Part shown: positions 20,968 to 55,274 of the stretch, piece by piece
Layout: every line of letters starts with the position of its first letter
Position numbering within the stretch: the stretch's first letter is position 1
Assembly (NCBI GenBank): GCA_038496445.1
Contig: JALMLS010000447.1
Coordinates: 186,001 to 250,000, forward strand
Source: Trichosphaerium sp. ATCC 40318
Taxonomy: Eukaryota > Protista > Tubulinea
Length of the DNA: 64,000 nt
Reading direction: 5' to 3'
Position numbers and translations under genes: made by a program
Notes under the pieces: model-generated
The model's input: only the letters and a program-made list of their open reading frames with translations
Told to the model about the DNA's origin: nothing
Database searches by the model: none

Positions 20968-22795
20968 ATGGCAAAGCTTAACGTGTTGACACTCTTTTTC
21001 TTTGTTTATATTGGCCAAAGCACGTGTGGTTTGGTTTCAAGGTGTACATGGCAAAATAATACATACGCTCTGTATAATGATCTAGACGCTGACTCTTGCG
21101 AAATGGGTACGGTTTACTGCATTTAATAAAGTGGGCGAGCTCCTTGGCTTTATTGTTTTGTTTGCTTTGTAACACGTTATTATCGCTTTAGGCTACAATC
21201 ACCTCATATTAGACAGTATTATGGAAGCATCTGTAATGACTTTATTTCCCGTACGTTGGATAAACGATACACAATTCTGCCGTTTTCGTTTTTCTTTTTT
21301 TTGCCGTTCAAAATCACGTGCGTTTTCTTTATGTGTTTTCACTTTTTTTATTTTTTAGCCTTTGAGTTTGAATGTTACCTCGATAAACACCACGGCAGAC
21401 GTTATTGATTATTTTTGGTATGATGGCTCTCTTGTAAGTCCTATTGTGAGTAGAACTTTTGCTGGTAATTTGGTTGATGATAACAACTGTCCTTCACTTG
21501 TCGGAGGTGTACGCAACTTTCTCGTAATTAAAACAGTTCGAGTTTTTTCTTACATTCAACAGTTCATTCGGAATAATTGTGAATCAACCAATTTTGTTTG
21601 TGAAGCGCCTTCAGAGGATGTCCAACCAGTATCAACTCCTTGTGTTGAAATAACTCCGAATATATCTTGTGATCATAGAAGCTCTGTTTCATGTGCGGAA
21701 AAATATGAAGAAATGTTTTGTTCCTTTTTTTCTGATTTGTCTTTTCAGTTGCTTGCTATACAACTTTTTTGTCGCGACGTACATGGCCTGAAGCTCAAGG
21801 TAAGTATCAATAGTTTGATAATACATGTAACGTATATAGGCCTTTGTTTACAACAAGGTGGACACCTTGCAACAATAAACAGCGCTGAGGAGTTTGAGTT
21901 TGTTGGCGGTTTGTTACCTCTAGATAACACAAGTACAGGTAACTGTACATGGATAGGATTGACAAGTGGATACAGAAACGATCACTTTGACTTTCAATGG
22001 GTACGACAACTGCTAGCTAGCCATTCTATTTTTAGGATTTATTCGTATTCAAGGCAGTAACAAATGAACCACGTGTTTTTGGTGGTGAGTTTATGAAAAG
22101 CCCTTGGGGTTCTGAGGAGCCACAGAGCGTAGTGATTAGAGAAAATTGTGTATTGATGTGTGGGAATGAGTCTGTTGTTGAATGGGCTGATGTACATTGC
22201 CATCGAAGAGAACTCTTTGTTTGCGAGATTCAGCAACCTGGTATGAGTTAAACTCCTTGAGAGTTTGTTCATTCAACTCAACCTAGACATAACACTTATA
22301 TTTCTACTTAGGAGACTTTATACGAAATGATGTTGTTGTCCTCGTTGATTCAGACCTTTCCATTGATGGTACGAGTTTTGAAGTACCCACCAATACAAAC
22401 ATAGCAGTCTGATAACCTCCTTTAGGTACAGCTCGGTTCAACAACACGACACTTGAGATACGAAAAGTAAATACAATACTTAATGTTACTGGATGTATTG
22501 TGGGTTCATTTAAGCTTAATCTAATGTCAATTGTGGTACACACTCAAATACCTGTTGGTGATTCGAACTAATCACTTTATTGTATTTTTAGGAAAATTCA
22601 GTACTAATATCACAGAGTCAAGTGTGTGTAGAGGTAACGCCATCAGTTATCTTGCGTACAAACCAATGTCAGGAGCAAACAAGGGCATCAACATCATTAA
22701 CAAGAACTCTTGATATTTCGACTTTCAAGTGTGCTAGTAACACTCTCATTGGGTGTATTGTATTAATGCTTGCCATGGTTGTTTTGTTATTGTAG
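20968..22795 (+). CDS. Signal peptide + C-type lectin + GPI-signal protein, paralog A
   Basis: MAKLNVLTLFFFVYIGQSTC...SCEMG. CTLD motifs TWPEAQ, CLQQGGHLATINS, WIGL, PWGSEEPQ...ENCV...WADVHC...FVCE. Hydrophobic C-terminus CIVLMLAMVVLLL*. Confidence 0.85.
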
Positions 22796-24081
22796 AAGCA
22801 ATAAAACTTGTACAAAGTAAACCCATTTCTACGAATATCACGTGGGAAATAAAAAGGAATAAAAATCCACATACAACTTTGTTGGACTTCGATGGTAAAA
22901 GCAAGAGGCTTTATATAACTCTTAAGCGTTCTTTGTGACTACCTTACCTTTAAAGCATTTAATTATGTAACACCACAAGAGTGAGAGAAACTAAAGCAAA
23001 AGAAGAACATATTCATCTCTGTTAAAAACGAGGAAATAGTTGTTTTCTTTTCTTTAGTTCGCAACAAAAGCGGACATCAAGGGTATCGAAGCTTAGACGT
23101 ATAATCTATGAACTCCTGAGAGGGCTTTAAACTTCTTTTGTAATACCATTACAGCCATTTTATGGCAGTACCTATTGACACTGTACTGGTATGTGATACA
23201 TTGCGTTTAAATGTATTGTACGCCCATTTAACTCAGGCTCAGCAAGCATCTGTTAAGGGCTGACCTGACCAGTTAACCTAAAGTTGTTTATAGATCAAAC
23301 ATTCTCACATACCAACACAGCGCGCACTCACTGCATTGTTAGGTCCAGCATTTTGTTTTTTTCAAAACCACAACTAGCAATTTAATACCTTCATCTGTAG
23401 CATGATTACAGCCAATAAGGCCAATAGTATGAACTCCAGCAAATCTTGATAAAATACTATCAGTTACAGTACGAATCAGTGAGATTCTTGTATTCCATAG
23501 AATGCCACTGTCTGCTACCTTGTGATAATCAGACCTCAACTTTTTTTTGCAAACAATAAGCAACGTTGACTGTCAGTACTTTTTCTCATTACTACAAGAA
23601 CGAATCACAAAATGTTTTTTATATCAACAAGTATAGCATCTTGGTGCATGTTGAAAGACGCGATAGAGGTGAAAAATACTTCAGTGGTGAGTAAAAACGC
23701 CTTAAAGATTCACTGAATTTCACTAAACATTTCTGTGCCCGTCTCAACTATAAACGCCGCTGCCGTAGCGGTGTTATTTATACGTGTATAAATAGGAAAA
23801 ATAATTTTGTCGGAATATAAAAAAACCCCCTCAAGACAAACCATGTACTCTACAAACCAATAAACAAAAACCTTATCTGAAAAAAGAAAGGTTCTATTTT
23901 TTGCACGTGTCGTAGATAACAAAATCCTAATTTGTTGCTCCTATTATTATAGAAAAACATCATTCTTACTTGTATCACTATTTTGGAGTAATGAAGTGGT
24001 TGGTAGCACCAAAACAATTCGATCTTTAAAATTTTCTACATTGCAATGTCATTTGTGTCACAAATAACAGGTTTAGTTATT

Positions 24082-24425
24082 GGGCAGCACAGTTTTTGCA
24101 ACAAAGTTTACAATTTGTCAAAATTGTAGAAATTGCAGAAATACATAAAATAGCAATTGCTACTTTTACTGCATTTTATGGAATCTTTACAATACTATTT
24201 CTCATCACTGCAATCATTGTTGTACTATTGATTGTGCCTCATAGTATACAGTATACTATAGAGTACTTTGAAGTAATGAGAAATTATTTCGTTAATGCAC
24301 TGGTGAGAAAAGGTAGTGCCAGTGTTGCCAATGTATTTTTCACCTTGTAATTTTAGGTGTTTTCACAAATTCTCATTTAAGGCAATTCGGCAAATTGTAA
24401 AAATTAAACAAAAACTGTGCTGCCC
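24082..24425. mobile_element. MITE-like element
   Basis: Perfect 17-bp terminal inverted repeat gggcagcacagtttttg (24082-24098) / caaaaactgtgctgccc (24409-24425), extending imperfectly to about 45 bp. AT-rich interior. No clear TSD. Confidence 0.65.
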
Positions 24426-24715
24426 CACAAATACATAGTCTTTTTTGGCGGTCTCTTCCTACGGTTTAGTTACTTTACGCACTAAAGGGGCTTCAGATGG
24501 TCGCGACATTTTTGTATACATTTAAAGTACTCCAATAATCTTCTATAAATACTTGAATCTCTTCTGTCTTTTTACTGTTCACAGCCTTAAGTATTCTAGT
24601 TTGATACGGTTAATTTACGAGATGAAAAAAAAAAAACCTGAAATGAACAAAAGGACTTAAGGCAATACGTCTTAACCAATACCGTGTTTTGTACTGCGTA
24701 TAGCACCTCCTTGAC

Positions 24716-30352: not shown

Positions 30353-30746
30353 GAAAAACACGTGTAAAACATGTCACTGTAAAATTTAAATGTTTACCAT
30401 TTGTTAACTTCCATACCAGTTGGCTATAAGTCGATACTATACCGCGCAAGATGCTGTTTTGTTGTAAGAAAGAGGTCTTGACCGCCTTTTGGCGTAGCTG
30501 TAAGCTAGACTTCCCTAAATTGTACCACTCCATCCAGATATTCAACAAAAATGTTATCTACCTAGTACTGGTTTTCTAATGACTTCTGAAGTTCTATAGT
30601 GCGGCTGTAGTCGTTGTCTTTGTTTTTCTGTTGTTAACATGGCGTTCCATTCTATAGACCTTGTGATGAGAAGGAGAATTTCTACCAAATGATTTGGCGT
30701 ATTTTCTATTTGCTTGGCTCTCAACAACTTTTTTTTGAAAATCAAA

Positions 30747-30903
30747 TGTACCACCAACGACTCTACCTCCAATGACAACAGATCCTCCAACTATGACAGA
30801 CCCGCCAACAACTCTACCTCCAACAACATTACCACCAACACTTCCACCTACTGCACCTCCGATAACTTCGCCACCAACTACCACACCTCCTACACGGCCT
30901 CCT
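30747..30903 (+). repeat. Pro/Thr-rich low-complexity coding-like repeat (PPTT)n, probable gene relic
   Basis: PPTTLPPMTTDPPTMTDPPTTLPPTTLPPTLPPTAPPITSPPTTTPPTRPP. Upstream frames are interrupted by stops. Confidence 0.5.
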
Positions 30904-31384
30904 GTGTATGCACTTTCAGGAAGGCAGGGATGTGTGCGGAGATTATCCCAAACTCAGGAAAGTAAATAAGCACATGTAATTAATGACTTTGTTTCGTTTT
31001 TGTTTTGTTTATGTTGTCCATTGAGAAACTAGTTTTTTTCCTACAAAACCTAACATCAAGAAATGGTGTGAACTATTTGTGTGACAATGTATGGTTACGC
31101 AACTTATACTATTAGATGCTCCTGTTCAATGTGATTGGAATGTAACACTTGAATATAAGCGTATTTGTCCATGGCTATGATGCAAGGGACAAAAGATACA
31201 AAATTTAGAAATCACGTGATAAAACTACGGAACAAGTTAACCAATGCCTTAAGATTACAAAAACACTCACTGTATGAGTCTTTGAAGGCCAATAAACAAG
31301 GTACACGATTTGAGAATAACTTCCCGATTATTTTTTTTTTGCTACCAAATACCAAATACTTGAATTTCAAAACAAGCTTCGACT

Positions 31385-33217
31385 ATGACTTCAAGAGTTA
31401 CATTACTGGCATTGTTTATGTTTATTTATATCTCTAACAGTATGTGCGCAGTTGTTTCGAGATGTTTTTGGCAAAATACAACATACACGCTCCATAATGA
31501 TACAGACAACGATTCATGCGAAATGGGTAATGTTTCTATGAGAAAGGACCTTTATTTTCCCCACTTATTTATTTTCTCGTAGGATTTAACCCTCTTGTAC
31601 TTGACAGTATTATGGAAGCATCTGTAATGACTTTATTTCCTGTACGAGAGCACAAATTTTAATCCTTTTATTTTATCTCCAAATCATGTGTTTGTTGTTA
31701 AAAAGGTTGAATAGCGATTACGTTTGAATATCACCACTTCAAACAGGACTGATTACTTTTGGTATGATAACTCACTTGTCAATACCATCGCTATGCATCT
31801 ATTGGATGCATATAGAGGAAGCCCTATTAATGATACCAACTGTCCTACACTCCATAGAGGCGTACAATGTTTTTTCGCAAAATAATTTGTTGACGTTTTT
31901 TAATCTTTTGATAGTTCATACAAAATAGTTGTATTTCAGATCATTTCGTTTGTGAAGCTCCCTCTATCAACGTTCAATCAGTAACAACACCTTGTGTAAA
32001 ACCACCAGATAACGTATCTTGTGATCACTACAACACCTCCGTCTCAGGTATTGAAAACAAAAAGAAATATGATATTCTCCTTATTTTTTACAAACAATTT
32101 CCAGGTAATTGCTACAACCCTATTCTTTTGACTTATACATGGCCTGAAGCTCAAGGTACTCTTGCGTTTTATTAAATACTCATCAATTACAATAATAATA
32201 TGTTATCAATAGCACATTGTTTACAACAAGGAGGACACCTTGTAACAATCAACAACAACGCAGAGCTCAATTTCGTTGGCAGTATAGTACCACTTGGTGT
32301 AACGCTAACACGTCAAGCATGGATAGGATTGGCAAGCGGATACAGAGATCACCTTGACTTTCAATGGGTGCCTTAGTTTGTTTTCTTATTTAGCGAGTAA
32401 CACTGAATGCAATCAGGCAGTAACAAATGAACCACGTGATTTTGGACAAGAATTTAACGTATCCCCTTGGCGTGAAACTGACCCAGGAAGAGATGATAAA
32501 GAAAGTTGTGTACTAATACTCCAATACGAGGGAACATTATCATGGCATGATATAATATGCGATTCAGCGCATTACTTTATATGTGAGATCGAATCAGCAG
32601 CTCCTCCAACACGTATGTGATTAAACATTAATATTTTATGAGTTATACTTACATCCACACCAACAGATTCTCCAACAAAAGGTATTCAAGATAACTTTAA
32701 TAATGCCGTAATATCGGTTCATCTTCATGGTGTTGTGAGGTGTTAGTTACTAACTTGTTGTTAGATTTTATACCAACTGATAGTGTTGTTGTACTTGACT
32801 TTGATGTTTCTATTGATGGTACAAGCGTATTTCATTATTTAGTGACTAACAGACTTCAAAGGCGAAGCAAGGTTCAATAACACAATAATTCAGCTGAGCA
32901 AAAGCCAAACAGTATTTGAAGTGAGCGGTTGTATACTTGGTCCATTTAACATTGATGCAACATCAATTGATGTACACTACAATTTACTCATTTTAGCATA
33001 ACGTGGGTTGTAGGAAGCTTCAATACAGATATCGCAGAGTAAAGGATGTGAAGAGGTTACACCAATGGTTCTTTTGGATGGAACTCAATGTGATGAGCAA
33101 ACAAGATCAACAACATCAGCTTTAAGTATATTCACAGTGAGGGTTTTCAAGTGTAGCACTCAAACACTCAGCGTGTGTATTGTATTAATTCTTTTCATGC
33201 TACTCTTGATATTGTGA
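31385..33217 (+). CDS. C-type lectin GPI-signal protein, paralog B (about 11 exons)
   Basis: MTSRVTLLALFMFIYISNSMC. CTLD HCLQQGGHLVTINN...AWIGL...PWRETDPGRDDKESCV...WHDIICDSAHYFICE. C-terminus CIVLILFMLLLIL*. Confidence 0.88.
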
Positions 33218-33866: not shown

Positions 33867-36800
33867 GTGATAGTAACTTTGTCAACTTTTTTTGTCAATA
33901 TTTACAATGTTGTCAACTTTGTTACAAAATGCTGTAAAAATTATTTTCAGCACGCACAGCCAGAAACAACGTATTTGAGTTGAAAATACAGAGTGATGCC
34001 CGATTTAGAAAAAACACGTGTTGGGTTTTTTTTTTGCTTTAAATGTACCATGTGGTTTTACACGTATCTCACATGGTATGTACTACTACACCTTAAACAG
34101 TACATAGTGATGCATTTTGCAAATTTTTAACCCGTTTAAGGTTTTTATTTCACAACAGCAGCATATTGTACTGTAAGAGAGTTTTTGCGCGTAGAAAAGC
34201 ATAGTGTAGGTACTTGCGAGATGGTTTACTTTATTATCTTTTGATTTTGCCCCATACTTTTTTACAATTGGTGAAATATGTCTACAGTGCTTCTAACATA
34301 CCATGAGATATCAATAGTTACTTTTTTGTAACATGGGAGGTAAGTATAACAAAAATCTGTAAACAACTTCAAGAAGTGTATACACAGCCTTGAACATTGT
34401 GTTATGAGCGTTTGAAAGATCCTACATCACTTAACAAGCCATACTTACTATTTGTGTTTGATGTTGGACGCTAATGAGCCACCATTACGGCCAGCAATAC
34501 CATCAATAGGTAACGTCAAGCTGCTTGCATGGAACCAAGGAAACAACCCTGTTTTTTATTGTTCAAAAGAGAAAAAGTGGGCTCGACAATATAGTCACAT
34601 ACGCCATGCAAACACACACAAAGGGATTACATGGTATTACCGTTGCAAAAGACGCAGGATTTGTACAGCTAAGTTACAGATTGTCTCAAGAGCTGGTAAA
34701 GACGCTGAACATGCTCAAGTGTTGGATATCAGACAAACAGAAGGTACTATAAACAACAACAGTTTAATTGAAGTTTAAAATAACCAAAATTGTTAGGGCA
34801 TTCTCTACAGTGCCTCCCTATTCCCATTCATAAATTAAAACTTGGAACTGGCGCAAAAACTAGCATTAAAAAAGATCTGGCACGCAAAATACCAAAACGA
34901 AGTGTGGTACGAAAAATGACATCAGCATCTATCACTAATTGTTTTTATGTACTAGTATAAAGCTTTTTTACAAGATGAATCTAAAGATCCTCTTAATGGC
35001 TATGAGGTTCCTAACGCTAATAACATGGCATACCTGGCGCGTAGAGTGCACCACGAAAAGGATATGCACCATGAGGTATTGGTTTTTTATTATGCTTGGA
35101 TTAACATGCCCACAGGTTTACTCAAACATTTGGATGATGTACCCCGAATCATCTAGAATTGTTCAAGCCACAAATGATGTAATATCATTTGTCGAGCCAG
35201 ATTGTGACAAAAAAATACGCAACCTTGATACCAGTGTCCTCTTTGTTGATGGCACCTTTGGCATTGTGGATATTAACGCTCAAGTACGTGTAGTAAAAGT
35301 AAACAAGATTTTTTAGCTCATATATTTTACTTTAGGTTTTGTTTTTTTGGGTAAAGGCTGTTGGTGAACACTACACCAAAGGAACTTGTATTAGCTTCGC
35401 CATTATGAAGAATAAAACACTGGCAGAGTATGAATATGCGTTTATGCACCTATAGAGTGTATGTGGTGCTCCTTTTGAGCGTTTGATGACTGACGGAGAG
35501 ACAAACATGAAAAGAGGTACTTTTTTTGCCAACATTTGTTTTACAACTAGTAATATTTGTTTAGCCGCTACAAATGTACTGGGACCCTTAAAAATAGCCC
35601 AGTGTATTTACCATATAGCAGAAGCTCATAGACGAAGGCGAGCAAGGCTAGGATTGAAAAAAGAAGGGCGTGAAGAAGAGAATAGATGGTGTAAGCTTGT
35701 TTCTTCTGAGCTGATATACGAAAAAAATGAGAAAGCATTCTATCGTAAATGGCACGCCTTTAAAAAAGAAGTGATTGAGAAGAGCGATGACTGCAAACAA
35801 TTTATTAAATACTTAGCTAATACTTACATTGAGGTTGCAAACGAAATAACCGAGTACACTACATAATTCATACCACAACCTTTTTCTTATTTTTTCCTTA
35901 CTTTTCGTTTTAAACTTTTTTTTTTACTAGCTCTCCTCCATCTACTTGGGCTCTTTGGACTGTTAAGAATACACCTTGGGAGCACTGTCGAACGAATAAT
36001 ATCAGTGAGGGCAACAACTGCGATGTCAAGAATGTGTTAACATTTGAGGGTACTACTAAGCGAGCTTGTGATGTTGTGTTTTCTTCTCTGGCAAACTATG
36101 CAAAGTGCAGCTTAAAGGATGGCATGCATACAGTAGAAGGAATACCTGTTGGCACTCCCAAAGCTGTCACAGAGAAGAGGCGCAAAGAGCAAGCTGAGAA
36201 AATCAGAAAGCGGTGCATGTGCTAATGCTACATTAATTTTTGCTTATAATGTTGTTTAGTGAAACGGCTTAATACTCTGCTGCTAAAATTAAAAGCACAA
36301 CAAAAAGCTGCAAGAGAAGCTAAAGAAGCTAAAAGAATCCAAAAAGAAAAAAAACAACGCCTTCAACATAACCAACGCCTTACAGTGCCATTAAAGGTTA
36401 GAATCTTGGGTAAATTTAAGCTATTAACTTTGCTCATAGCTTCGAAAGAATAAAACAATCATAATCAAAAAAAAATCAATGAAAAAATACCTTGCTACCA
36501 AACTTTAATAAACTTCATTTCCTCCTCTATTGTGGCGTTTACTTGTGGCTGATGAGACGCCTGTAGTATATATATAAACGGTGAAGTTCTTGGTTTGTTT
36601 TTAAATAGCTTAGTTGTGGTTCAGGGCTTCATTTCTACCAACTACTTACTGATTTTTTGGTCAACTTTCTGTCAACTTTTTGTGTCAGCAATTATTACTG
36701 TAGGTATTTCATGAAACGTAATATTAAAGGTCTTTCAACCTAAGCAATATATATGTGCTTCGCAGGATATGCTTTGTTAATAATAAAAAAACAGCTGAAG

Positions 36801-36868: not shown

Positions 36869-36975
36869 CTCAAGAACACTATGTGAAAAGACGAAAACAA
36901 GCAAACACCAAGTGTTCGTGCACAGTTGATAAGAAAGAAGTAGTTTGATTTTAACACGTGTTTTCTTATTCAATT

Positions 36976-38803
36976 CTACAATATCAAAAGTAGCATGAAA
37001 AGAATTAATACAATACACACGCTAAGTGTTTGAGTGCTACACTTGAGAACCCTCACTGTGAGGATACTTACAGATGATGTTGTTGATCTTGTTTGCTCAT
37101 CACATTGAGTTCTATCCAAAAGAACCATTGGTGTAACCTCTTCACATCCTTTACTCTGCGATATCTGTATTGAGGCTTCCTACAACCCACGTTATGCTAA
37201 AATGAGGAAATTGTAGTGTACATCAATTGATGTTGCATCAATGTTAAATGGACCAAGTATACAACCGCTCACTTCAAATACTGTTTGGCTTTTGCTCAGC
37301 TGAATTATTGTGTTATTGAACCTTGCTTCGCCTTTGAAGTATATTAGATAAACTGGAATTAAATCAACAACAGTACCATCAATAGAAACATCAAAATCAA
37401 GTACAACAACACTATCAGTTGGTATAAAACCTAACAACATTGTTAGTAACTAACACCGTGAAGCTAGAACTGATACTAGGTCATTAAAAAGTTTTCTTGA
37501 AATACTTGTTGTTGGAGAATTTGTTGGTGTGGATGTATGTAAGTATAACTCATAAAATATTAATGTTTAATTACATACGTGTTGGAGGAGCTGCTGATTC
37601 GATCTCACATATAAAGTAACGTGCCGAATCGCATGTTGTATCATGCCATGATAATCCTTCGTATTGGAGTATTAGTACACAACTTTCTGTAGCATCTCTT
37701 CCTGGGTCAGTTTCATGCCAAGGGGATACGTTAAATTCTTGTCCAAAATCACGTGGTTCATTTGTTACTGCCTGATTGCATTCAGTGTTAATCAACAAAC
37801 GCTAAATAAGAAAACAAACTAAGGCACCCATTGAAAGTCAAGGTGATCTCTGTATCCGCTTGCCAATCCTATCCATGCTTGACCACGTGTTAGCGTTACA
37901 CTAAGTGGTACTATACTGCCAACGAAATTGAGCTCTGCGTTGCTGTTGATTGTTACAAGGTGTCCTCCTTGTTGTAAACAATGTGCTATTGATAACATGT
38001 TATTATTGTAATTGATGAGTATTTAATAAAACGCAAGAGTACCTTGAGCTTCAGGCCATGTATAAACCAAAAGAATAGGGTTATAGCAATTACCTGGAAT
38101 TGTTGTAAAAAATAAGGAGAATATCATCTTTCTTTTTGTTTTCAATACCTGAGACGGAGGTGTTGTAGTGATCACAAGATACGTTATCTGGTGGCTTTAC
38201 ACAAGGCGTTGTTACTGATTGAACGTTGATAGAGGGAGCTTCACAAACGAAATGATCTGATGTACAACTATTTTGAATGAACTATCAAAAAGATTAAAAA
38301 ACGTCAACAAATTATTTTGCGAAAAAACATTGTACGCCTCTATGGAGTGTAGGACAGTTGGTATCATCAATGGCGCTTCCTCTATATGCATCCAATAGAT
38401 GCATAGCGATGGTATTGACAAGCGAGTTATCATACCAAAAGTAATCAGTCCTGTTTGAAGTGGTGATATTCAAACGTAATCGCTATTCGACCTTTTAATA
38501 CATACACGTGATTTGGAGATAAAAAAAAGATTAAAAATTTGTGCTCCTCTCGTACGGGAAATAGAGTCATTACAGACGCTTCCATAATACTCTCAAGTAC
38601 AAGAGGATTGAATCCTAACCGAGTAAATAAACTATTTGGGAAAATACACTCGGTCTCATACCCATTTCGCACGAATCATTGTCAGGATCATTATGGAGCG
38701 TGTATGTTGTATTTTGCCAATAACATCTCGAAACAACTGCGCACGTACTGTTGGAGATGTAAATAAACATAAATAATGCCAGTAATGTAACTCTTGAAGT
38801 CAT
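36976..38803 (-). CDS. C-type lectin GPI-signal protein, paralog C (inverted near-copy of B)
   Basis: MTSRVTLLALFMFIYISNSTC; PWHETDPGRDATESCV...WHDTTCDSARYFICE. Most introns are near-identical to paralog B. Confidence 0.88.
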
Positions 38804-39795: not shown

Positions 39796-41625
39796 CTACA
39801 ATATCAAAAGTAGCATGAGAAGAATTAATACAATACACACGCTAAGTGTTTGAGTGCTACACTTGAGAACCCTCACTGTGAGGATGCTTAAAATTGATGT
39901 TGCTGATCTTGTTTGCTCATCACATTGAGTTCCATCCAAAAGAACCATTGGTGTAACTTCTTCACATTCTTTACTCTGCAATATCTGTATTGAAGCTTCC
40001 TAAGGTACATGTGATTAAGTTAGAGTGGATATCGTTGTTTACTTCAATTGATGTTGCATCAATGTTAAATGGACCAACTATACAACCGCTCACGTTAAAT
40101 ATAGTATTGCCTTTGCTCAGCTGAATTATTGTGTTATTGAACCTTGCTTCACCTTTGAACTCTGTTACTAAATAATGAAATACAAATTGTACCATCAATA
40201 GAAACATCAAAATCAAGTACAACAACACTATCAGTTGGTATAAAATCTAACAACATTCCAACCTTAGTAAACATCTTTCAAAGACAATACCTGTTGTTGG
40301 TGTATCAGATGGTGCGGCTGTTGGCACTGATGTTGGCAAAACTGAAATGAACAATATTGTTATATCTTTGTTAAGTTCTAACAATATCCTTACCTGTAGG
40401 TGCTGCTATCGTTGTAGGTACTGTTGGTGGGTCTATCTCACATATAAAGAGTTCTGTTCTGTCACAAGTAATATCACCCCACAATACCCCTGCAGTATAA
40501 TTGCGCATGAATACACAATTTTCTTTGCTGTCGTTTCCAGGCTCATTTTCCTGCCAAGGTACTACAAAAAACTCTCTTCCAAAATCAAGTGGTTCATTCG
40601 TTACTGCCTTTGTATGTGTTAATTGATAGTAGGGTTAAGACCTATTAGTACCCATTGAAAGTCAAGGTGAGTTCTGTATCCACTTGTCAATCCAATCATT
40701 GCAGTATAACCTCGATCTACACTTTCTAGAGGTAAAATAGTTCCAATGAACTTATACTCCTCATCGCTGTTGATTGTAACAAGATATCCGCCTTGTTGCA
40801 AACAATGACCTATTTGATACCGTTATTGATATCTACTTTTTCGGTAGTACCTTGGGCTTCAGGCCATGTGTAACGCATTTCAAAAGGATTATAGCAATGA
40901 TCTATATTAAATCAACAAATAACGGAGAACGAAACAAGTTTTTAACTGAATACCTGAGCTCATATGCTCACAAGATATATTTTGTGATATATCTATGCAA
41001 GGTTTTGATACTGGTATAGTATCACTGGAGGGTGCTTCACAAACGAAATGATCTGAGGAGCAATTACCGTTTTGTATGATCTACCACAAAATAGGTGATT
41101 TAATACTGTTTGCAAAACCTATTGTACGCACGCCTCCCTGAAGTGTAGGGCAATTACTGTCGTTTATAACACTTCCTTGATATGCTACACCCATAGCAAT
41201 GTTATTGACAAGCGAGTTATCATACCAAAAGTAATCAATACTGTTTGAAGTGGTAATATTCAAACGTAATCGCTAATCAACCTTTTAAACAAAACACGTG
41301 ATTTGGAGATAAAAAAACATAAAAAAAACCCACGTGATTCTTTCATCGGTTAGTTTTGTGGACGTACGGGAAATAAAGTCATTACAGATGCTTCCATAAT
41401 ACTGTCTAGTACAAGAGGATTGAATCCTAACCAAGGAAAATGTAATTATTACGGTAAATAAGGCTATTCAGTTTGGCAGTTACCCATTTCGCATGAATCG
41501 TTGTCTGTATCATTATGGAGCGTGTATGTTGTATTTTCCCAAGTACACCTTGAAATAACTGCGCACGTGCCCATAGTTATGTAAACATATAAAGCGAGTG
41601 CAGACAGAGCATTACTTGAGGTCAT
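39796..41625 (-). CDS. C-type lectin GPI-signal protein, paralog D
   Basis: MTSSNALSALALYVYITMGTC; QQGGYLVTINS; PWQENEPGNDSKENCV...WGDITCDRTELFICE; C-terminus CIVLILLMLLLIL*. Confidence 0.85.
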
Positions 41626-42056: not shown

Positions 42057-43251
42057 TCAAACACGATCAATCTTACATGCTTCTTCACAAGTAATTTGAG
42101 TGCCATCATAGTAAAACTCAACGCAATTCTCCATCAAATATGGTATACACTCATTTGTTACCAGACCACAGGAATTTACCATAATACATTCAGCTTTCGT
42201 CAAAGTCTTAATACCTTCATCAGTAACAAGTGAACATTCGCTCAAATCGATTACTTTAACACCTTTTAAGCCAACAGCTCTCACTCCAACATCAGTGATG
42301 GCTGTGCAACCTGAAACATAAAGAATGCTAATACCTGCAAGAGCTATGAGTGAAGCATCTGTTATAGAAGTCTGACAAAGAACTGCAGAATAGCAACCTC
42401 TAAGTGCTTTGACACCTTCATCTGTTACACGAGTACAACTGTTAATATTGATCGTATGTACACCTGCCAATGCCTTTAGGCATTCATCTGTTACAGGTAA
42501 GCGTCTTAAATTAACAGTATGAACACCAGAAAGCGTAAAAAGTCCTTTAGAAGTCAGATTATTGCAACACGTGAGGTCTATTGTTTTCACTCCTTTAAGT
42601 GCTTCAAGACCCTCATCTGTGATAGCTGCACCGGCAAGATAGATAGTATGGACTCCTTTTAATGCTTTAATACCTGTATCAGTGATAGACTCGCAATTCT
42701 CAAGCAGTATAGTATGGACACCTTGAAGTGCTATCAACGACTTATCGGATATCTTAGTTGCTGATAAATCGATTGTATGGATCCTTCTCTTGTTGTTTGA
42801 AACAAGTGACAACACCCCAGTATCAGTTATCTCAGAGTGCGACAAACCAATGGCATGTATGTTGCTGAGCTCTGCCACACATTCATCTGTGATATTAGGA
42901 GTATAAGAAGCATCAACGTCTCGTACATTAGCCAAAGATTTAAAGTCCGAAACTGTCAAATCGTTCATTTGAGATAAAATGATTTTTGTGTTTTTGAGAA
43001 GCGGATTGCCGTCTAGTAGTTTTAATGCGCTCCTTGAGCGTATACGTATTTCACCATAGCCAATACGGTGCCTAACGATGGTCGATAAGGCTTTACAAGT
43101 TTGAGCGGCTGTATAACGCAATTTGATATTGCCAACGCGTATAATAAGCGTTAGCATATCTATTGGTAGGTCCAGAATACATTGTGGACGCAAGTCGCTA
43201 CAGCTGAGTTAAATGATGTAGAAAAACCCTTAATTTGCTTTTGTACCTCAT
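42057..43251 (-). CDS. F-box-like + leucine-rich repeat protein (FBXL/AMN1-like)
   Basis: 5-nt first exon ATGAG|gtacaa...ctgtag (intron 43198-43246) gives MSDLRPQCILDLPIDMLTLII (F-box-like). About 12 LRRs of the type LxGVHTIxLxxxxITDxG lie in one uninterrupted exon. Confidence 0.85.
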
Positions 43252-43679: not shown

Positions 43680-45402
43680 TCACAATATCAGAAATAACAT
43701 GACTAGAAGCAGTACAGTACACATAGTGAGTCTCCGAGAGCCACACTCGAAAATTGAAATATTTAGAGTGCTTAACAGTGATGTAGATGATCTTGTTTGC
43801 TCTTGACACTGCTTTATACCCAAGAGAACCATTGGTGTCGCTGCTACACACTCTGGTTTTTGTGATATCAATACCGAAGCAACCTATAAATACATATGTG
43901 ATTAAATTCGAAAAAACAATATTGGTTTTACCCTGACTGACTTTACATCAACAATAAATGTTCCAATAATACAACCAGTCACATTGACTATTGTATTAGT
44001 GTTTCTTATCTGAAGTGTCGTATTATTGAACCTAACAGTGCCTATGATAAAGAGTTGAGTTAGTACAACATACATTCCAACCACACAAGTACCATTAACA
44101 ACAAGATTTGAGTCTAGTACAACAACACTATCGGGTGTAAACTCTACAACATATTAGTAACCAACCTGATTACTCACAATAGTGTTTATGTACGTGTTGG
44201 AATTTGTTCTATCTCACATATAAAGAGTTCTTCTCTGTGACAAGCTATATCAGCCCATATTACTTTTGTAGTATCGTTACGCATGATCACACAATTTTCC
44301 TTAGTATCGGCGGTGGTTGATGGCTCATTTTCAAACCAAGGGAATACAAAAAACTCCCTTCCAAAATCACGTGGTTCATTCGTTACTGCCTTTGTATGTG
44401 TTAATTGATAGTAGGGTTAAGACCTATTAGTACCCATTGAAAGTCAAGGTGAGTTCTGTATCCACTTGTCAATCCAATCATTGCAGTATAACCTCGGCTT
44501 AAACTTTCCAGAGGTAGGATGCTAGCAATGAAATTGAACTCATCAGTGCTGTTTATTGCCACAAGGTATCCGCCTTGCTGTAAACAATGAGCTATTTGCT
44601 ATAGTTATTCTCTATTTGTATAGCACAGACTTTTTTCTAGACCTTACCTTGAGCTTCAGGCCATGTGTATCTCATTTCAAAAGTGTTGTAGCAATGACCT
44701 GGTAAGTAATCAAAAAAATGAATAGGTTCGTCGCACACTACCCGAAATAGAGTTGTAGTGATCACAAGGTATATTCTGTGCAACCTCTATACACGGTTTA
44801 GATACTGGAGGTACATCACTAGAAGGTGCTTCACAAACGAAATGCTCAGTGGTACAATTACTGTTGTGTACGAACTAGAAAGAAGTGAGATAAATGAAGA
44901 TAAACTTGAATAATGTCACAGCACGAAATGCACTCACGCCTCTATGTAGTATAGGACAGTTTGTGTTATTAATGGTACTCCCTCGAAATGTTATATCCAA
45001 AGCAATTGTATTTACAAACGAGCTATCATACCAAGAATAATCTGAACTTCCTTGAGATATATTTAACCTTAGCTGCTAATAACGCTTTATTAAAAAAAGA
45101 CACGTGATTTCGGAGATTCAATTAATTTTTGCCTCGTGGACGTACGGGAAATAAAGTCATTATAGATGCTTCCATTATACTGTCAAGTACAAGAGGATGG
45201 TAGCCTAAAATCGTAAAAACGGTTTAGCCTATTAATGATACAATCTTTATTATAACATACCCATTTCGCATGAATCATTCCCTATATCGTTATGAAGCGT
45301 GTATGTTGTATTTTCCCATGTACATCTTGAAATAACGTCACAAGTGCTTGTAGAGATATTAATATACAAAAAGATTACCAGCAGGGCAAATCCGGAACTC
45401 AT
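43680..45402 (-). CDS. C-type lectin GPI-signal protein, paralog E
   Basis: MSSGFALLVIFLYINISTSTC; PWFENEPSTTADTKENCV...WADIACHREELFICE; C-terminus CTVLLLVMLFLIL*. Confidence 0.85.
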
Positions 45403-45754: not shown

Positions 45755-47592
45755 TTACAATATAAAAAATAGAATGATTATCAGTAATGCAATACAAACA
45801 GTAAGTGTTCGACTGCTACACTTGAAAACCTGTATATTGAGAGTGCTTGATAGCAATGACGATGTTCTTGTTTGATCAAAGCATTGGTTTGAACGCAAGA
45901 GGACCATTGGTGAGATCTCTGTACATTCTTTTAGATGCGATAACATAATTGAACCTGCCTATAAAATAACATGTGCTTAAGTGTTTGTATAGGATATTTG
46001 AGTTGGTACCTCAATTGATGTTGCATCGATGTTAAAAGTGCCAACTATACAGTCGCCCACTTCAAATATTGTATTTGTTTTGCTCAGTTGAAGTGTTGTG
46101 TTATTGAATCTAGCTGTGCCTTCAAACGTATATTAGATTGTAAAGATTCCTAGTCCTAAAAATTACCATCAATAGAAATATCAAAATCGAGTACGACAAC
46201 ACTGTCAGTTGGTATAAAATCTAACTACAAGTTAGTAACTAACACTTGGTATTTAAGTTGAAACAAACTTGTTGTTGGAGCACCAGATGGAGCATCTGTT
46301 GGAGCATCTGTTGGCGTGGATTAGGTAAAACTGATGAGGTATTAATATTTCGCAACTTCATCACATACGTGTTGAAGGAGCTGGTTCAATCTCACATATA
46401 AAGCGAAACCGTCTATCACATGTTATGTCATGCCATGTAAAATTTCCTATTGTGTCGTTCCGCATAATTACACAATTTTCCTTGCTTGTATTGAAGAATT
46501 GTGGTTCGTTTGGTCCTTGCCAAGGGAATACATAAAATTCTTGTCCAAAATCACGTGGTTCACTCGTTACTGCCTAAGTGTATGCGTTAGTTATACAAAT
46601 CGGCAAAATATAATAGTACCCATTGAAAGTCAAGGTGATATCTGTATCCACTTGTCAATCCAAGTACTATAGAAGTTATGGGATAGTCGTAAGGGAAAAT
46701 ACTTTTAATAAAATCAAACTCTTCAGCACTGTTGATTGTTACAAGGTATCCATTTTGTTGTAAACAATACGCTAAGATTATTATTGTAATTAGTGTATAA
46801 TATTTGAATATAATAGTACCTTGAGCTTCAGCCCATGATAAATACGACCCAATAGAGTTGTAGCAATGATCTGTGATCTGCTTTAAAAAAAGGGAGAATA
46901 CTAATAAAGTTTCTTTTCGTTTATAATACCTGTATCGTTGTTGGGGTGCTCACAAGGTACGTTATCCGATATCTCTACGCAAGGCGTTGTTACTAGTGGA
47001 ACATTGCCAGAGGGAGCTTCACAAACGAAATGATCTGATGTACAACTATTTTCTATGAACTATCAAAAGATTAAAAAAAACTTCAACAAATTATTTTGAG
47101 AAAAAACATTGTACGCCTCTATCGAGTGTAGGACAGTTGGTATCATTAATAGGGTTTCCTCTATATTCAATCAATTGTTCCATAGCGATGTCATTGACAC
47201 GCGAGTTGTCATACCAAAAGTAATTAAGACTGTTTGAAGTGGTGATATTCAAACGTAATCGCTATTCGACCTTTTTAGCAACAAACACGTGATTTGGAGA
47301 TAAAATAAAAAGATTAAAAATTTGTGCTCTCGTACGGGAAATAAAGTCATTACAGATGCTTCCATAATACTGTCAAGTACAAGAGGGTTAAATCCTACGA
47401 GAAAACAAATAAGTAGGGAAAATAAAGGTCCTTTCTCATAGAAAAGTTACCCATTTCGCACGAATCGTTGTCTGTATCATTATGGAGCGTGTATGTTGTA
47501 TTTTCCCATGTACACCTTGAAACAACTGCGCATGTGCTGTTGGTGATGTAAATAACCATAAACAGTGCGAACCAGGCAAGTCTTGAAGTCAT
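45755..47592 (-). CDS. C-type lectin GPI-signal protein, paralog F
   Basis: MTSRLAWFALFMVIYITNSTC; PWQGPNEPQFFNTSKENCV...WHDITCDRRFRFICE; longer Pro/Thr stalk (PTDAPTDAPSGAPT); C-terminus CIALLIIILFFIL*. Confidence 0.85.
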
Positions 47593-48003: not shown

Positions 48004-48290
48004 ATGGAGATTAAAAAAATTAAAGATTATTTTGGTATGATGACTCACTTGTATATCGTTGCTATGATCAAAGAATACCCTGGTACTAATGTTGATAGTA
48101 ATTGTCCTAAAATGGGTGAATACTGACATTGTTTACACTTTGAGAACATTTCAAAAATGACTTCCATTGCTAAAGTACATTTTGTTTGTGAAGCACCTTC
48201 AATTGATATCCCTATACAATAAAGCCTTGTGTGAAAAAAGCAACACAGAAACTACCTTGCGAGCAAAAGAGTTCTGAATCAGGTATAGCA
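48004..48290 (+). pseudogene. Degenerate relic of lectin family (exon 3-4 fragments)
   Basis: Recognisable family segments ttattttggtatgatgactcactt (YFWYD) and cattttgtttgtgaagcacct (HFVCEAP), with deletions and stops. Confidence 0.65.
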
Positions 48291-50560: not shown

Positions 50561-50689
50561 CTCATACCTTATGACAGCTTGTACATTTTGTAAATACAGT
50601 AGATCAGTATTAAGTAAACCTCAAATAAACTTGCGCAACATTTCGTAGTCAGTGAAGGCTATACTTTCATCGTATACAAGCTTCGAGTA

Positions 50690-51190
50690 TTGACATCAAG
50701 ACTTGCATTATTCGCACTGTATATGTTCGTTTACATCACCAACAGCACATGCACAGTTGTTTCGGGATGTACTTGGGAAAGTACAACATACACGCTCCAT
50801 AATGATACAGACAATGATTCGTGCGAAATGGGTAATGTTTTAATGAGAAAGAACTTACTCGCATTTTATTTGCCCTAACATTGCTTTGTTAGCTAGGATT
50901 CAATCGTCTTGTACTAGACAGTAAACATGGAAGAATCTGTAATTACTTTATTTCCTCTGTATGAGAATGCTATAGAAATCACAGACTATAATTGTGGTTA
51001 TCACAAAAAAAAAAAAAAAAAAAAAAGGCAACCTTCTCCCTCTTTTTAAAGGCTTTACAGGTCATTGCTACAGCCCTGTTCGCTTGAAGTACACGTGGCC
51101 TAAAGCTCAAGGTACCCTACAAAAAAATAGTATCTCTGAAATATTAATATATTAATAGTTCATCTCAAGGACATTGTTTACAACAAGGTG
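50690..51190 (+). pseudogene. Truncated lectin family pseudogene
   Basis: Exons 1-2 are homologous to paralogs, but the ATG is disrupted (agtattgaca vs agtatgact). Internal deletions, a poly-A tract, and an end after HCLQQG. Confidence 0.75.
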
Positions 51191-51411
51191 TACTAAAAAA
51201 GAACCTATCCTTTGTGTTCTTGTTCGCCACTTGTCATTGTTGTTAACTGATTTGCTTCTTTGTTGTGTATTGTATGAGAATAGAATAGAGTCGGTTCACT
51301 CAGTTCAAACGCGTGAAATAATCGAAAGTCATTCAAAAACAATTGTTTACGTTGTACGACTTTTTTTTCTTTTCTCTTTATTAATCTTGCGGGCAACCCT
51401 TAACTCCATTA

Positions 51412-52374
51412 ATGACATCCAAAACACCAAAATACAATGTACGGTATAAACGACGTCACACTACGACTAACAACAACAAAAACTAGTTACCATCCGAGGA
51501 ATGTCTTGTATTGTGTCTTCCGTTGGAACTACATTGTGAAATCATTGATTTAAGCTTTGAAGTTTATCAAAAGTGGTCGTTGTTATCAAAATACACAGCA
51601 ACAACAACAAGGTTTGACAACGAGTTGAATAAACGTGGGAAATGGATAAAAAAAAGAGATAAACTGCTAACTGTTTTATTTCACGTGCATTTCAAAAACG
51701 GTTTACGTCATGGATATTCGAAGAGTTGGTATGATGACGGCCAAGTATCATCTCAAGTACAGTTCGTGAATGGTAAAGAACAAGGAGAGTTTAAGAAGTT
51801 CTATCCTAGTGGTACATTGAGGCAATGTTTCAATTACATAGATGGTAAAAAAGACAAAGAGTTTAAGCAGTTCTATAGGAATGGTCAAGTATCTACGCAC
51901 CGTAATTATTCCAATGGTGTACTAGAAGGAGAGTACAAAGAGTGGTATACTGATGGTAAAATGAAGATGAAGGTATTTTATGTCAACGGTAAAAGAGAAG
52001 GAGTGAGCAAGCGTTGGTATGAAAATGGCCAATTGAGAGCTCACTACAATTATGTGAATGGTAAAGAAGAAGGAGAGTGTAAGTACTGGTATGAGAATGG
52101 CCAACTGAGAGATCAGTACAATGCTGTAAATGGTAAACATGAAGGTGAGTGTAAGCGGTGGTATAACAATGGGCAATTGTGGAGTAATACATACTACAAA
52201 AATGGTACTATTGAAGGAGAAGCCAAGGAGTGGTATCAAAATGGACGAACAAAGAAAATAGTTTATTATGAGAATGGCAAATATAATGGCACTTTTAAGA
52301 GGTATGACTTACGGGGCAACTTGACTTTACAGTGTAGATATGTAAATGGTTTGAGAATGAAAAAAAATAGCTAA
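51412..52374 (+). CDS. F-box-like + MORN-variant (MORN_2/YwqK-like) repeat protein
   Basis: Exon 1 MTSKTPKYN, intron 51439-51486 (gtacgg...ctag), then LPLELHCEIIDL (F-box-like) and about 9 repeats of G(E)xKxWYENGQLxxxxxYxNGKxE in a single exon. Confidence 0.85.
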
Positions 52375-53471
52375 AACTAAATAAAAAAGGTTGATTGTTT
52401 GAACACTGACACCAGATGCTGCACCGTATAATAAGGTATTCACTGCTTAATCTTCTTCAAGTCGAACATGCAAGTCATGCACTAATGAATCGTAGACAGA
52501 CACTGCATGATAATTCAATATGAAACCAGCACACCACGTGTTTTTTAACAACACTTGTCTTAAATAGCTCACACTGAGTCTTTACAGGTCATTAACCCTA
52601 TTACTGCTAAAGGTTGGCTACCATGAGATGTCATCTTCATCAAACCTGTACTAAGTGTCCAAAATGTTGAGATCCGAGTAAGTGTTGTCCGTTTTATATT
52701 ATCCGTCTCATTTTCGTCTTACTATTTTCTAGAAAGTGAGTTTCTAGCACTTTTAGCAGATCTAGCAAGAATTGACACTTGTCAAATGGTGTAGATCTAT
52801 CACCATGTGAACTATTTGCATTACTATATTGTTTCATAGTATGACTTGCGTACCTGTAAGGTGAACAAAAATGCGTGTATGTCAGTTTCAACAGACCACT
52901 TAAGATTGCAGCATTTTAACTACGCAAACTGTACACGGTACGAGCCCACAAGAGTGCTCAATGAGGTAAAAGCGAATTAAAAAGGTATGATGCCCTACAA
53001 AGCTATTGCATTACCGCCAAACACGATATGAATGGCCTCAAACACCGTTTGCTGTATGTTTTGTTACAACAATTCAACGTAAGTGTATAACTTACTAGCG
53101 CTACACTGGCGCCTACCCCACGCTAACAAAAGTGCTACGGCAGCACCCAAACAGCAAGTCAGGTGTAGCAATATTAAACCTTCCCAAAGTGCCACTAGCG
53201 TTGCTGTAGGCTTTGTAAACGCCGCCAGGTGTCAAATATTTGTAACAAAAAATTTTGCAATGGGTTTGTTAAATCACGTTTCCACGTGGGTTTAAACTGT
53301 TGGATTCACTCGACAGGCAGGAGGCTAGATTATTTGAAAAAAGATCTATCGGAAGTGGCAATCCGTCAGATAATGGATAGACAATGTTAAGGTTTTCTTT
53401 GGGAAATGGTAAACGACTTTCTTTAGTTCACAGCATATTCTAGAAAATAAGAAGCTACTCTTGAAAGTAAT

Positions 53472-55274
53472 ATGATAAAGCTGACCTTAGCACTTCTTTT
53501 TCTATGTATTTATACGAGCGAAAGCACGTGCTCAGTCGTTTCGAGGTGTTTTTGGGAAAATACGACCTACACGCTTCATAATGATACAGATAACGATTCA
53601 TGCGAAATGGGTATGTTATAATAAATGGGTAAATGACTTTTACTTACCAAAAGTTTTTTACGGATTTAGGCTACAATCCCCTCAAACTGGACAGTATTAT
53701 GGAAACATCAGTCATGACATTATTTCCCGTACGTCGCGTAACATCTTTTGAAGCGACTTGGATTTTTCTTCAAATCACGTGGTTTTTAAAAAGTTGTTTA
53801 GCCGTTACGTTTGAATATAACCAGTTCAAACAGTACTGCTTTTTTTTGGTATGACAACTCACTTGTAAGTCCCATGGCTATGTATAGAGCGTATCCTATA
53901 AGTTTCATTGATGATAGCAACTGTTCTACACTTGTAGGAGGCGTGAGTGCTTTTTTTTCTGTAGCGTGAGATAATGTTTTATTGATCGCTTTTACATAGT
54001 TCATTGCAAATACTTGCACCTCAGAACATTTTGTTTGTGAAGCACCTTCGGACACTGTCCCTTTTGTATCTACACCTTGTTTTAATCCAATACCAAGTGT
54101 GTGTGATTACAGGAGCTCTGTTTCAGGTATGTAGAAAATGAATCAAGAAATATTTTGTCTGATACAAAATTTCTTTAATTGATGTTTAGATTCTTGCTAC
54201 AATCCTGTTTCAACACGTCGTATATGGCCTCAAGCACAAGGTACATAACAAAAAAATTATCGCATTTATAAACAAATACAAGTTCTATTAGAAGCCAATT
54301 GAACAGTACAATAACTTTTACAATAGCGCATTGTTTACAACAAGGTGGATATCTTGTTACAACCACCAACGATGATGAGTTGGATTTTATTTCTGGTTTG
54401 ATACCACCAGGTGTACGAAACTGTACATGGATTGGATTGACAAGTGGATATAGAAACGATCACTTTGACTTTCAATGGGTACTCCCACAAACTATTAAGT
54501 CTTAAGGGTGCACGTGCCCCCTTAAATCACAAGTCAATTTAATCCAAAATACACTTAGGCAGTAACAAATGAACCACGTGATTTTGGTGATGTATTTAAG
54601 GAACACCCTTGGAGTCCAGTTGAGCCAAATGATCATACAATTGATGGCGGTATCAAAGAAAATTGTATTATTATGTGCAATAGTAGGCCAAGTATATGGG
54701 CTGATGTACATTGCTATCGGGGCGAGTTCTTTATTTGCGAGATTGAAATACCCAAGGGTATGCTGAGATAAGTGATTTGTCCGTCAGTAACTGGTTTTTT
54801 GTAGGGTCTTTTATACCTACTGATAGTGTAGTTGTAATAGACTCGGATCTTATTATTGATGGTAAGGTATTTCATGTTTACACTCACACTGATTCTTTTC
54901 AAGGTTTGGCACTGTTCAGCAACACAACACTTCAATTAAGAAAAACCAATACAATATTTAATGTGAGTTCATGTATCATTGGGGAGTTTAACATTGATAC
55001 AACATCTGTTGAGGTACCACACCTGAATTAATTGTCACGTGATCAAATTAATCGCTCAATGTATTTATAGGCAGCTTCAATACAGATATCACAACTAAAA
55101 GGATGTGACGAAGCTGATCCAATGGTTCTCTTGGGCAGAAATCAGTGTCTTGAGCAAACTAGATCATCTACATCACTGTTGAGCACTCTCAATGTAGCGG
55201 TTTTAAAATGTAACAGCCATAAGCTTACTCTGTGCGCTGCATTACTTCTCATCATAGCTTTTTTGGTATTTTAG
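53472..55274 (+). CDS. C-type lectin GPI-signal protein, paralog G
   Basis: MIKLTLALLFLCIYTSESTC; HCLQQGGYLVT; CTWIGL; PWSPVEPNDHTIDGGIKENCI...WADVHCYRGEFFICE; C-terminus CAALLLIIAFLVF*. Confidence 0.85.

Follow-up and report, generated by a model that had tools for sequence, protein, structure and literature searches.

A tandem gene family of probably surface-anchored C-type lectin-like proteins in the amoeba Trichosphaerium, with variation concentrated in the domain's loops

The locus described here raises a question about an amoeba: what do seven similar, tandemly arranged genes encode, and are the differences between them those of a set of receptors for different ligands? The genes (copies A to G) lie at 20968-55274 of a 64,000-nucleotide stretch of DNA from Trichosphaerium sp. 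ATCC 40318, the whole of which we call the window and which corresponds to contig C72:186001-250000 of a 70.3-Mb, 642-contig eukaryotic genome. An earlier note on this DNA had proposed an array of glycosylphosphatidylinositol (GPI)-anchored C-type lectin receptors with a hypervariable ligand-binding loop. C-type lectin-like domains (CTLDs) are familiar above all from immunity and adhesion in animals and, to our knowledge, are represented outside animals mostly by isolated genes or transcript fragments. We conclude, with a probability of about 60%, that the region belongs to a large family of amoeba surface CTLD binding proteins, which is lineage-specific, duplicates in tandem and evolves by duplication, loss and gene conversion. 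Judged from its sequences, the family is probably surface-anchored, and the loops of the CTLD are its most variable part.

The gene models come first, as everything else is built upon them. Peptides from copy A, used as queries, matched seven collinear sets of 10 exons, and intron positions and phases, read from the junction sequences, are conserved in all seven copies. The spliced models are open frames of 412-436 residues with no internal stop, and all introns are GT-AG, 40-148 nt long and at homologous sites across the copies. The window has a GC content of 34-42% and very short introns; the published Trichosphaerium draft genome has a size of 70.87 Mb and a GC content of 37.7%, and its introns and exons average 75 bp and 154 bp, respectively (PMC10521059). 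A human source of the DNA was considered and dismissed on the strength of the 40-148-nt introns, the genome size of 70 Mb and features of amoeba type. The seven intact paralogs of the earlier note are all recovered, and the outer coordinates it gave for them are exact. Its shared architecture of approximately 11 exons holds for B, D and F, but not for A, C, E and G, which have 10; the extra exon is a Pro/Thr mini-exon between exons 7 and 8. Copy C is an inverted near-duplicate of B (94.5% amino acid identity, synonymous divergence (dS) 0.10) in which the mini-exon acceptor AG has become AA, and the mini-exon is for that reason skipped in our model of C and kept in B. The exon 4 donor of copy A, GTGCGG, was picked by homology to the other copies (an alternative, GTTCCT, lies 27 nt downstream), and the mini-exon of F has a weak donor, GTTTGT. 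The places where indels fall support these exon-intron models: in four close comparisons, 46 indels lie in introns and are mostly not multiples of 3, and four lie in exons, three of them of 3 nt and one of 1 nt (in the B-C comparison, its position not located).

Exons 5-7 are predicted to encode a genuine CTLD, as the earlier note had claimed. Pfam Lectin_C (PF00059; cut-off 22.6 bits) matches exons 6 and 7 of A, B, F and G at 20.2-23.7 bits each, with values of 22.9 (A), 20.2 (F) and 23.7 (G) for exon 6 and of 20.9 (A), 23.6 (B) and 21.0 (F) for exon 7. Local profile-profile comparison with hhalign, in which the exon 5-7 alignment of 23 paralogs was set against 81 outside CTLDs, gave a probability of 99.9% and an E-value of 1e-31. 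The four framework cysteines (alpha1, beta3, after beta4, and beta5) are present, the segments AQxxC, ENC/ESC, WxDxxC and F[IV]CE being invariant in 7/7 copies, and the WIGL-like strand reads WIGL in A, B, C and G, MIGL in D and E, and VLGL in F. Against CTLDs of the PDB, the exon-7 profile found collectin-11, MBP-A/C and the mannose receptor at E-values of 1e-7 to 1e-8. Because this profile aligns E-P-x, E-N-C, W-x-D and C-E of the family to EPN, E-D/N-C, WND and CE of these proteins, the EPx and WxD positions are, on the alignment, homologous to the canonical primary Ca2+/sugar site.

The residues at this site are far from canonical. In CTLDs, EPN versus QPD, together with WND, sets mannose versus galactose specificity, and the Asn of WND is a ligand of both the Ca2+ and the sugar. 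The EPx/WxD pairs that the earlier note had read for copies A to G are correct for every copy (Table 1). WND is found in 0/23 paralogs, the middle residue being A, H, G, S, V, I or R, and QPD is likewise found in none of the 23; EPN occurs in G only, the other paralogs having EPQ, EPG, EPS, DPG, EPE or QPQ. WxD has an invariant Trp and Asp, and the acidic ligands (Glu/Asp of EPx, the next Glu, and Asp of WxD) show little or no variation. The Glu of E-N/S/H-C, between the two motifs, does not vary and is aligned with E-D/N-C of collectin-11 and MBP-C; it is the counterpart of Glu193 of MBP-A. The domain thus belongs to the CTLD superfamily, yet it fails two defining features (EPN/QPD and WND) of the mannose/galactose-type sugar-binding domains. 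With WND absent and EPN in a single paralog, the mannose/galactose rule, which the earlier note had applied here, cannot be transferred to this family.

Such a site could belong to surface or coat proteins that are not lectins, in which the CTLD acts as a protein-binding or structural scaffold, for example of a fibrous test or glycocalyx, and the loops are weakly constrained. Many CTLDs do not bind sugars, and the loss of WND throughout and of EPN in all paralogs but one would fit this picture, as would the ratio of nonsynonymous to synonymous substitution (omega, or dN/dS) of 0.6-1.0 in the loops, which is what relaxed constraint predicts; Trichosphaerium does have a fibrous test (PMC10521059). 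That Glu/Asp-Pro, the Glu after it and the Asp of WxD vary little or not at all suggests, however, a metal or ligand site that has been retained and not one that has decayed, and we consider a scaffold role rather unlikely. The same combination, acidic Ca2+-site residues kept and sugar-type Asn ligands absent, would also fit biomineralisation or matrix proteins tied to spicule formation. Animal CTLD proteins such as the sea urchin spicule matrix proteins, perlucin and ovocleidin-17 direct calcium carbonate deposition. The schizont stage of Trichosphaerium bears spicules (PMC10521059), and the title of a related paper calls these amoebae calcifying (PMC11575492). On the other side, the sequenced isolate is described as spicule-free (PMC10521059), a membrane-anchor-type tail and paralog-specific loops are atypical of matrix proteins, and the seven copies contain no acidic or Gly/Pro/Gln-rich repeat regions. 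A part in spicule formation therefore seems very improbable to us.

The remainder of the protein is peculiar to the family. The Cys-containing N-domain (exons 1-4) is present as the earlier note had it, and is probably a second, degenerate CTLD: it shows a CTLD-like landmark pattern, and its alignment (23 paralogs) matched the 81 outside CTLDs end to end over 114 columns with P 9e-4 in a single planned comparison, at an hhalign probability of only 9%. The hhalign comparison of the N-domain with the family's own CTLD was not significant. Exon by exon, Pfam gave no significant match for exons 1, 3, 4, 8-9 and 10; profiles of exons 3, 9 and 10 gave nothing significant against the PDB, and exon 10 scored below 0.8 in the ESM Atlas, which is uninformative. 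Exons 8-10 would therefore form an orphan module of about 120 residues that has no relative in Pfam, the PDB or the ESM Atlas. Of the Pro/Thr stalk that was proposed between the CTLD and this module, part remains: it measures about 4-30 residues, is longest in D (about 30) and is all but missing from A, E and G. A HMMER search of 1.84 billion proteins with a 233-residue stop-free frame of copy A (exons 3, 4 and 6, with intron read-through) found no full-length relative and no member of the family. Its 36 matches, for example to ordinary multi-CTLD proteins, all cover the generic CTLD half only (query 140-223); none touches the N-domain, none has an E-value below 1e-30, and no sequence link to the CTLDs of other protists was detected beyond the generic domain. 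Exon-7 and exon-6 patterns matched nothing in viral and metagenome contigs, the sensitivity of these scans being limited to one or two peptide patterns; an origin from giant viruses was considered and set aside, as the scan of viral contigs returned no viral relative.

Both ends of the protein would fit a location at the cell surface. All seven copies have an N-terminal hydrophobic 12-mer within residues 2-18 (Kyte-Doolittle 1.8-2.7), which is followed by small residues, S-T-C, and all seven close with K-C-[SANG]-[ST] and then an uncharged tail of 16-17 residues that ends the protein (Kyte-Doolittle 2.95-3.25). Each protein carries 9-13 N-glycosylation sequons. The predicted signal peptide, GPI-like tail and sequons plausibly fit a GPI-type surface protein, with a tail-less transmembrane anchor as the alternative. 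We suggest that each gene would give rise to a glycoprotein of the secretory pathway that consists of a signal-peptide-like N-terminus, the Cys-rich N-domain, one CTLD, a short variable Pro/Thr linker, the orphan module and a GPI-signal-type tail.

The paralogs are mosaics made by gene conversion, introns included. In sliding windows over the genes with their introns, identity between B and F stands at 93-99% through exons 1 to 4 and at 60-75% outside them, that between B and D at 90-96% from exon 9 onwards and into the 3' flank, and that between D and E at 100% across intron 6 and its flanks. Intron-less copies and stop-free read-through from exon 6 to exon 7 were found in no family member. 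Genome-wide, the exon-7 profile matches 44 places and the exon-10 profile 49. After second-copy and contig-overlap duplicates are dropped, about 24 loci with a complete exon 7 remain, which supplies the genome-wide count the earlier note had called for; about a dozen further matches to exon 7 are partial or divergent. The array itself probably holds about 17 genes, since the last 13.4 kb of C72 are collinear with the start of contig C48 at 96.7-99.9% identity and C48 holds eight further tandem copies at 19.7-37 kb.

A second copy of the region, on contig C299 and 95-98% identical to the window, allows gain and loss to be seen directly. Copy H, an eighth array member just beyond the window, has lost most of exon 7 through deletions of 171 bp and 83 bp in C72, and its counterpart in C299 is whole. 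Copy G, intact in the window, is interrupted in C299 after codon 3 by a 6741-bp Ty3/gypsy-type long terminal repeat retroelement that is absent from the window; the element has terminal direct repeats of about 80 bp and open reading frames with reverse transcriptase, RNase H, integrase zinc-binding and dUTPase domains. C299 alone also has a partial inverted copy of G exons 6-10 (93.6% identical, with a TGA), lying between the points that match 59164 and 59188 of the window. The exon 8-10 module with its hydrophobic tail occurs at five or more loci that lack the upstream lectin exons (Table 1) and is therefore common to other head domains; the open reading frames upstream of such modules on C48 have no Pfam match.

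The window itself contains the two relics that the earlier note had reported. Relic 1 retains exon 1 (tblastn E 6e-24; first codon TTG, not ATG), an exon 2 split by a frameshift across two frames, exon 5 (E 1e-4) and the start of exon 6 (HCLQQG); tblastn found exons 3, 4 and 7-10 to be missing. Relic 2 comprises fragments of exons 3 and 4, namely FWYDDSLV with an NCP segment, the exon 4 piece HFVCEAPSIDIP (E 0.001-0.004) and PC..PCE, and tblastn found no further exons of the gene nearby. Given the relics, the copies broken in one haplotype only (H in C72, G in C299) and the partial duplicate of G, birth-and-death evolution, as first suggested from the window, is well supported. The same facts, together with the absence of any family member from the library of 1.84 billion proteins, could be taken to mean that the array is decaying, unexpressed and without present function. 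This we judge to be extremely unlikely: in 7/7 copies of the window the reading frame stays open across all 10-11 exons, nearly all indels within exons are multiples of 3, 106 columns are invariant among 12 paralogs, and dN/dS is 0.37-0.44 overall and 0.24-0.46 outside the loops of the CTLD.

Variation among the paralogs is sharply localised. Among windows of 9 residues along the whole protein, compared across 12 paralogs, the three with the greatest variability all fall within the CTLD: exon 6 residues 27-35 in the alpha2-beta2 loop, the most variable of all, exon 7 residues 41-49 in the beta3-beta4 hairpin before WxD, and exon 7 residues 26-34 directly after EPx. Loops and the rest of the protein differ in variability with a Mann-Whitney p of 2e-11, and the top window was reached in 0/2000 column shuffles. 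The earlier idea of a hypervariable binding loop thus stands in so far as variation is concentrated in CTLD loops, but the peak is in the alpha2-beta2 loop and not in the segment from EPx to WxD. Nonsynonymous divergence (dN) in the loops is 4-6 times that of the framework. For the three closest paralog pairs, pooled dN/dS is 0.96 in the loops and 0.36 in the rest of the gene, with nonsynonymous/synonymous counts of 53/16 and 112/82, respectively (Fisher p 0.006).

These figures invite the explanation that the family is an adaptively diversified recognition repertoire, in which diversifying selection on the loops opposes homogenising conversion and each paralog has its own glycan target on prey, pathogens or symbionts. 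Variation that peaks in the CTLD loops and includes indels would fit, as would a loop dN/dS 2-3 times the framework value, the 8 nonsynonymous changes against 1 synonymous change in the alpha2-beta2 loop of close pairs, and the variability of the two canonical Asn positions beside invariant acidic Ca2+ ligands. In the pair Hh-I, framework synonymous divergence (pS) is 0.00 while loop nonsynonymous divergence (pN) reaches 0.3-0.4.

Several observations weigh against this explanation and also against the broader reading that we prefer. The loop dN/dS of 0.96 in close pairs is not above 1 (binomial p 0.62). Maximum likelihood under the GY94 model gave, for 23 paralogs, an omega of 0.58 in the loops and 0.285 in the framework (tree lengths 30.7 and 11.1), and gene conversion weakens all tree-based rate estimates here and invalidates simple tree-based tests. 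Synonymous divergence is itself raised in the loops of close pairs: in the pair Hh-I, loop pS is 0.33-0.55, compared with 0.00 in the neighbouring parts of the exons. At least some of the loop differences are therefore old sequence, either imported or passed over by conversion, and not the product of fast point substitution. Classical Ca2+-dependent sugar binding appears doubtful, as WND is missing from every paralog and EPN from all but one, and neither the N-domain nor the exon 8-10 module has a significant relative in Pfam or the PDB.

The two copies of the region do not differ more in the loops than elsewhere: the window and C299 show 3 nonsynonymous differences in about 510 loop sites and 39.5 in about 3980 sites outside them. 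Loop polymorphism between the region copies is not raised, and kin discrimination, one of the functions that the earlier note had offered, is weakened accordingly. Uniform divergence with a loop dN/dS far below 1, which that note had named as evidence against its own proposal, is not seen (0.58-0.96), and a value above 1 is not demonstrated. The loop dN/dS pattern fits relaxed constraint with patchy gene conversion equally well as diversifying selection. Of the diversified repertoire, the concentration of change in the loops and their raised dN/dS have held; a dN/dS above 1 and a WND-type site have not, and in our view the adaptive explanation is possible but somewhat improbable. In a fuller version, the germline would hold some two dozen lectin-like surface receptors, with conversion keeping the scaffold uniform and selection preserving distinct loops around a re-engineered Ca2+ site. 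We regard this as unlikely; if true, a single-celled organism outside the animals would have its own equivalent of the diversified innate recognition families, with which to discriminate prey, algal surfaces or microbes.

We therefore return to a lineage-specific family of surface CTLD binding proteins. The most likely role would be that of a cell-surface binding set for the adhesion or capture of food particles, of algal or bacterial surfaces, or of the amoeba's own coat. The family evolves by duplication, loss and frequent gene conversion, and conversion evens out the framework and leaves the loops distinct. Differences between paralogs lie chiefly in the loops of the CTLD, around a Ca2+ site of non-canonical make-up (Glu/Asp-Pro-x, an invariant Glu and Trp-x-Asp) at which the two usual Asn ligands vary. 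If the proteins are surface-expressed and bind ligands, they would offer a tractable system for how a phagotrophic protist recognises food or partners and would show how a CTLD site functions when both canonical Asn ligands are lacking; should they bind nothing, the array would be an ordinary lineage-specific surface-protein expansion.

The coordinates of the genes, relics and neighbouring features are collected in Table 1. Adjoining the array is a very long gene of many repeated units, an adhesin-type repeat protein, one open frame of which matches the SdrD B-like domain (PF17210, E 4e-31). The spacer of 3.8 kb within the inverted pair B/C has four consecutive open reading frames of 103-136 residues with no Pfam match, which may be a mobile element that came along with the B/C inverted duplication. 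About 400 bp upstream of copy B is a Pro/Thr-rich open frame (PPTT-type repeats) with no Pfam match, whose opposite strand reads as a Gly/Val-rich frame. A single-exon gene for a leucine-rich-repeat protein (LRR_6, E 6e-16) lies between copies D and E, an open reading frame with MORN_2 repeats (E 2.5e-34) directly follows relic 1, and a gene with NHL repeats (PF01436, E 2e-8) lies downstream of the array.

Table 1. Positions of the lectin-like genes, their relics and relatives, and neighbouring features (window coordinates unless a contig is named)
Feature	Position	Strand	Exons	Residues	EPx/WxD	Exons or parts
Copy A	20968-22795	+	10	415	EPQ/WAD	20968-21106, 21192-21250, 21359-21508, 21563-21692, 21749-21799, 21840-22000, 22054-22240, 22312-22368, 22426-22535, 22592-22795
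Copy B	31385-33217	+	11	421	DPG/WHD	31385-31526, 31583-31641, 31715-31861, 31915-32047, 32105-32155, 32213-32367, 32417-32612, 32667-32681 (15-nt Pro/Thr mini-exon), 32765-32818, 32862-32971, 33014-33217
Copy C	36976-38803	-	10	416	DPG/WHD	38803-38662, 38614-38556, 38482-38336, 38281-38149, 38093-38043, 37985-37828, 37771-37579, 37430-37377, 37331-37222, 37179-36976
Copy D	39796-41625	-	11	436	EPG/WGD	41625-41484, 41426-41368, 41272-41132, 41080-40954, 40901-40851, 40809-40652, 40607-40394, 40341-40291 (mini-exon), 40246-40193, 40152-40043, 39999-39796
Copy E	43680-45402	-	10	413	EPS/WAD	45402-45261, 45204-45146, 45075-44938, 44874-44742, 44698-44648, 44591-44434, 44389-44194, 44143-44093, 44041-43932, 43883-43680
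Copy F	45755-47592	-	11	430	EPQ/WHD	47592-47451, 47394-47336, 47261-47115, 47059-46930, 46870-46820, 46771-46620, 46573-46369, 46307-46269 (mini-exon), 46220-46167, 46119-46010, 45958-45755
Copy G	53472-55274	+	10	412	EPN/WAD	53472-53610, 53670-53728, 53802-53942, 54000-54126, 54190-54240, 54327-54478, 54559-54757, 54805-54861, 54904-55013, 55071-55274
Relic 1	50690-51189	+				exon 1 50690-50830; exon 2 50899-50956; exon 5 51063-51110; HCLQQG 51172-51189
Relic 2	48025-48281	+				exon 3 pieces 48030-48114; exon 4 piece 48157-48216; PC..PCE 48222-48281
Copy H	C72:254473-255914	-
Counterpart of copy H	C299:36199-37895
Retroelement in copy G	C299:14283-21023
Partial inverted copy of G	C299:26785-27636	-				exons 6-10
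Exon 8-10 modules without lectin exons	C72:267653-268143; L021:2581-3071; loci on C100, C40, C406 and C494
Adhesin-type repeat gene	1-13000	-				open frame 315-1208
Pro/Thr-rich open frame	30739-30966	+
Four spacer open reading frames	34416-36222	+
Leucine-rich-repeat gene	42060-43208	-
MORN_2 repeat open reading frame	51487-52371	+
NHL-repeat gene	57862-59011	+

Among known systems, the best solved-structure matches to the exon-7 profile are the carbohydrate-recognition domains of the collectin/MBP type (MBP-A, MBP-C, collectin-11 and mannose receptor CTLD4), with which the amoeba family has in common the four-Cys framework and the WIGL-like strand; its Glu-Pro-x, Glu and Trp-x-Asp stand where these domains have their primary Ca2+ site. 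Unlike them, it has no WND, has EPN only in G, and lacks a collagen or coiled-coil neck; in the amoeba proteins a domain that is probably a degenerate CTLD comes before the CTLD, and the orphan module and a GPI-type tail come after it. The expanded CTLD families of invertebrates (clec of nematodes; those of mosquito, shrimp and bivalve) have also arisen by tandem lineage-specific expansion, with tandem CTLDs per protein and variant EPx/QPx and WxD motifs, and are mostly secreted animal immune lectins. The Trichosphaerium family resembles these in its tandem lineage-specific expansion and non-canonical sugar-site variants, but it lies outside animals, has its own C-terminal module and predicted anchor, and finds its nearest library matches only in the generic N-terminal CTLD half.

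In protists, CTLDs have been reported from Radiolaria, Apicomplexa, Guillardia, Aureococcus, Reticulomyxa and choanoflagellates as transcript fragments or single genes, with WIGL-like and often non-canonical sugar motifs and a proposed role in cell-cell or symbiont recognition (PMC4362344). A C-type lectin is listed among the candidate pattern-recognition receptors of Acanthamoeba (PMC4053784), and the Trichosphaerium genome paper makes no mention of lectins (PMC10521059). Compared with the protist CTLDs reported before, the family described here is a genomic array of about 24 loci with mosaic gene conversion and with differences in gene content between region copies. What sets it apart from earlier non-animal CTLDs is a whole genomic array in an amoebozoan, with its own domain architecture, in which gene conversion goes together with loop variation that is sharply localised, and in which two copies of the region show directly that genes have been gained and lost.

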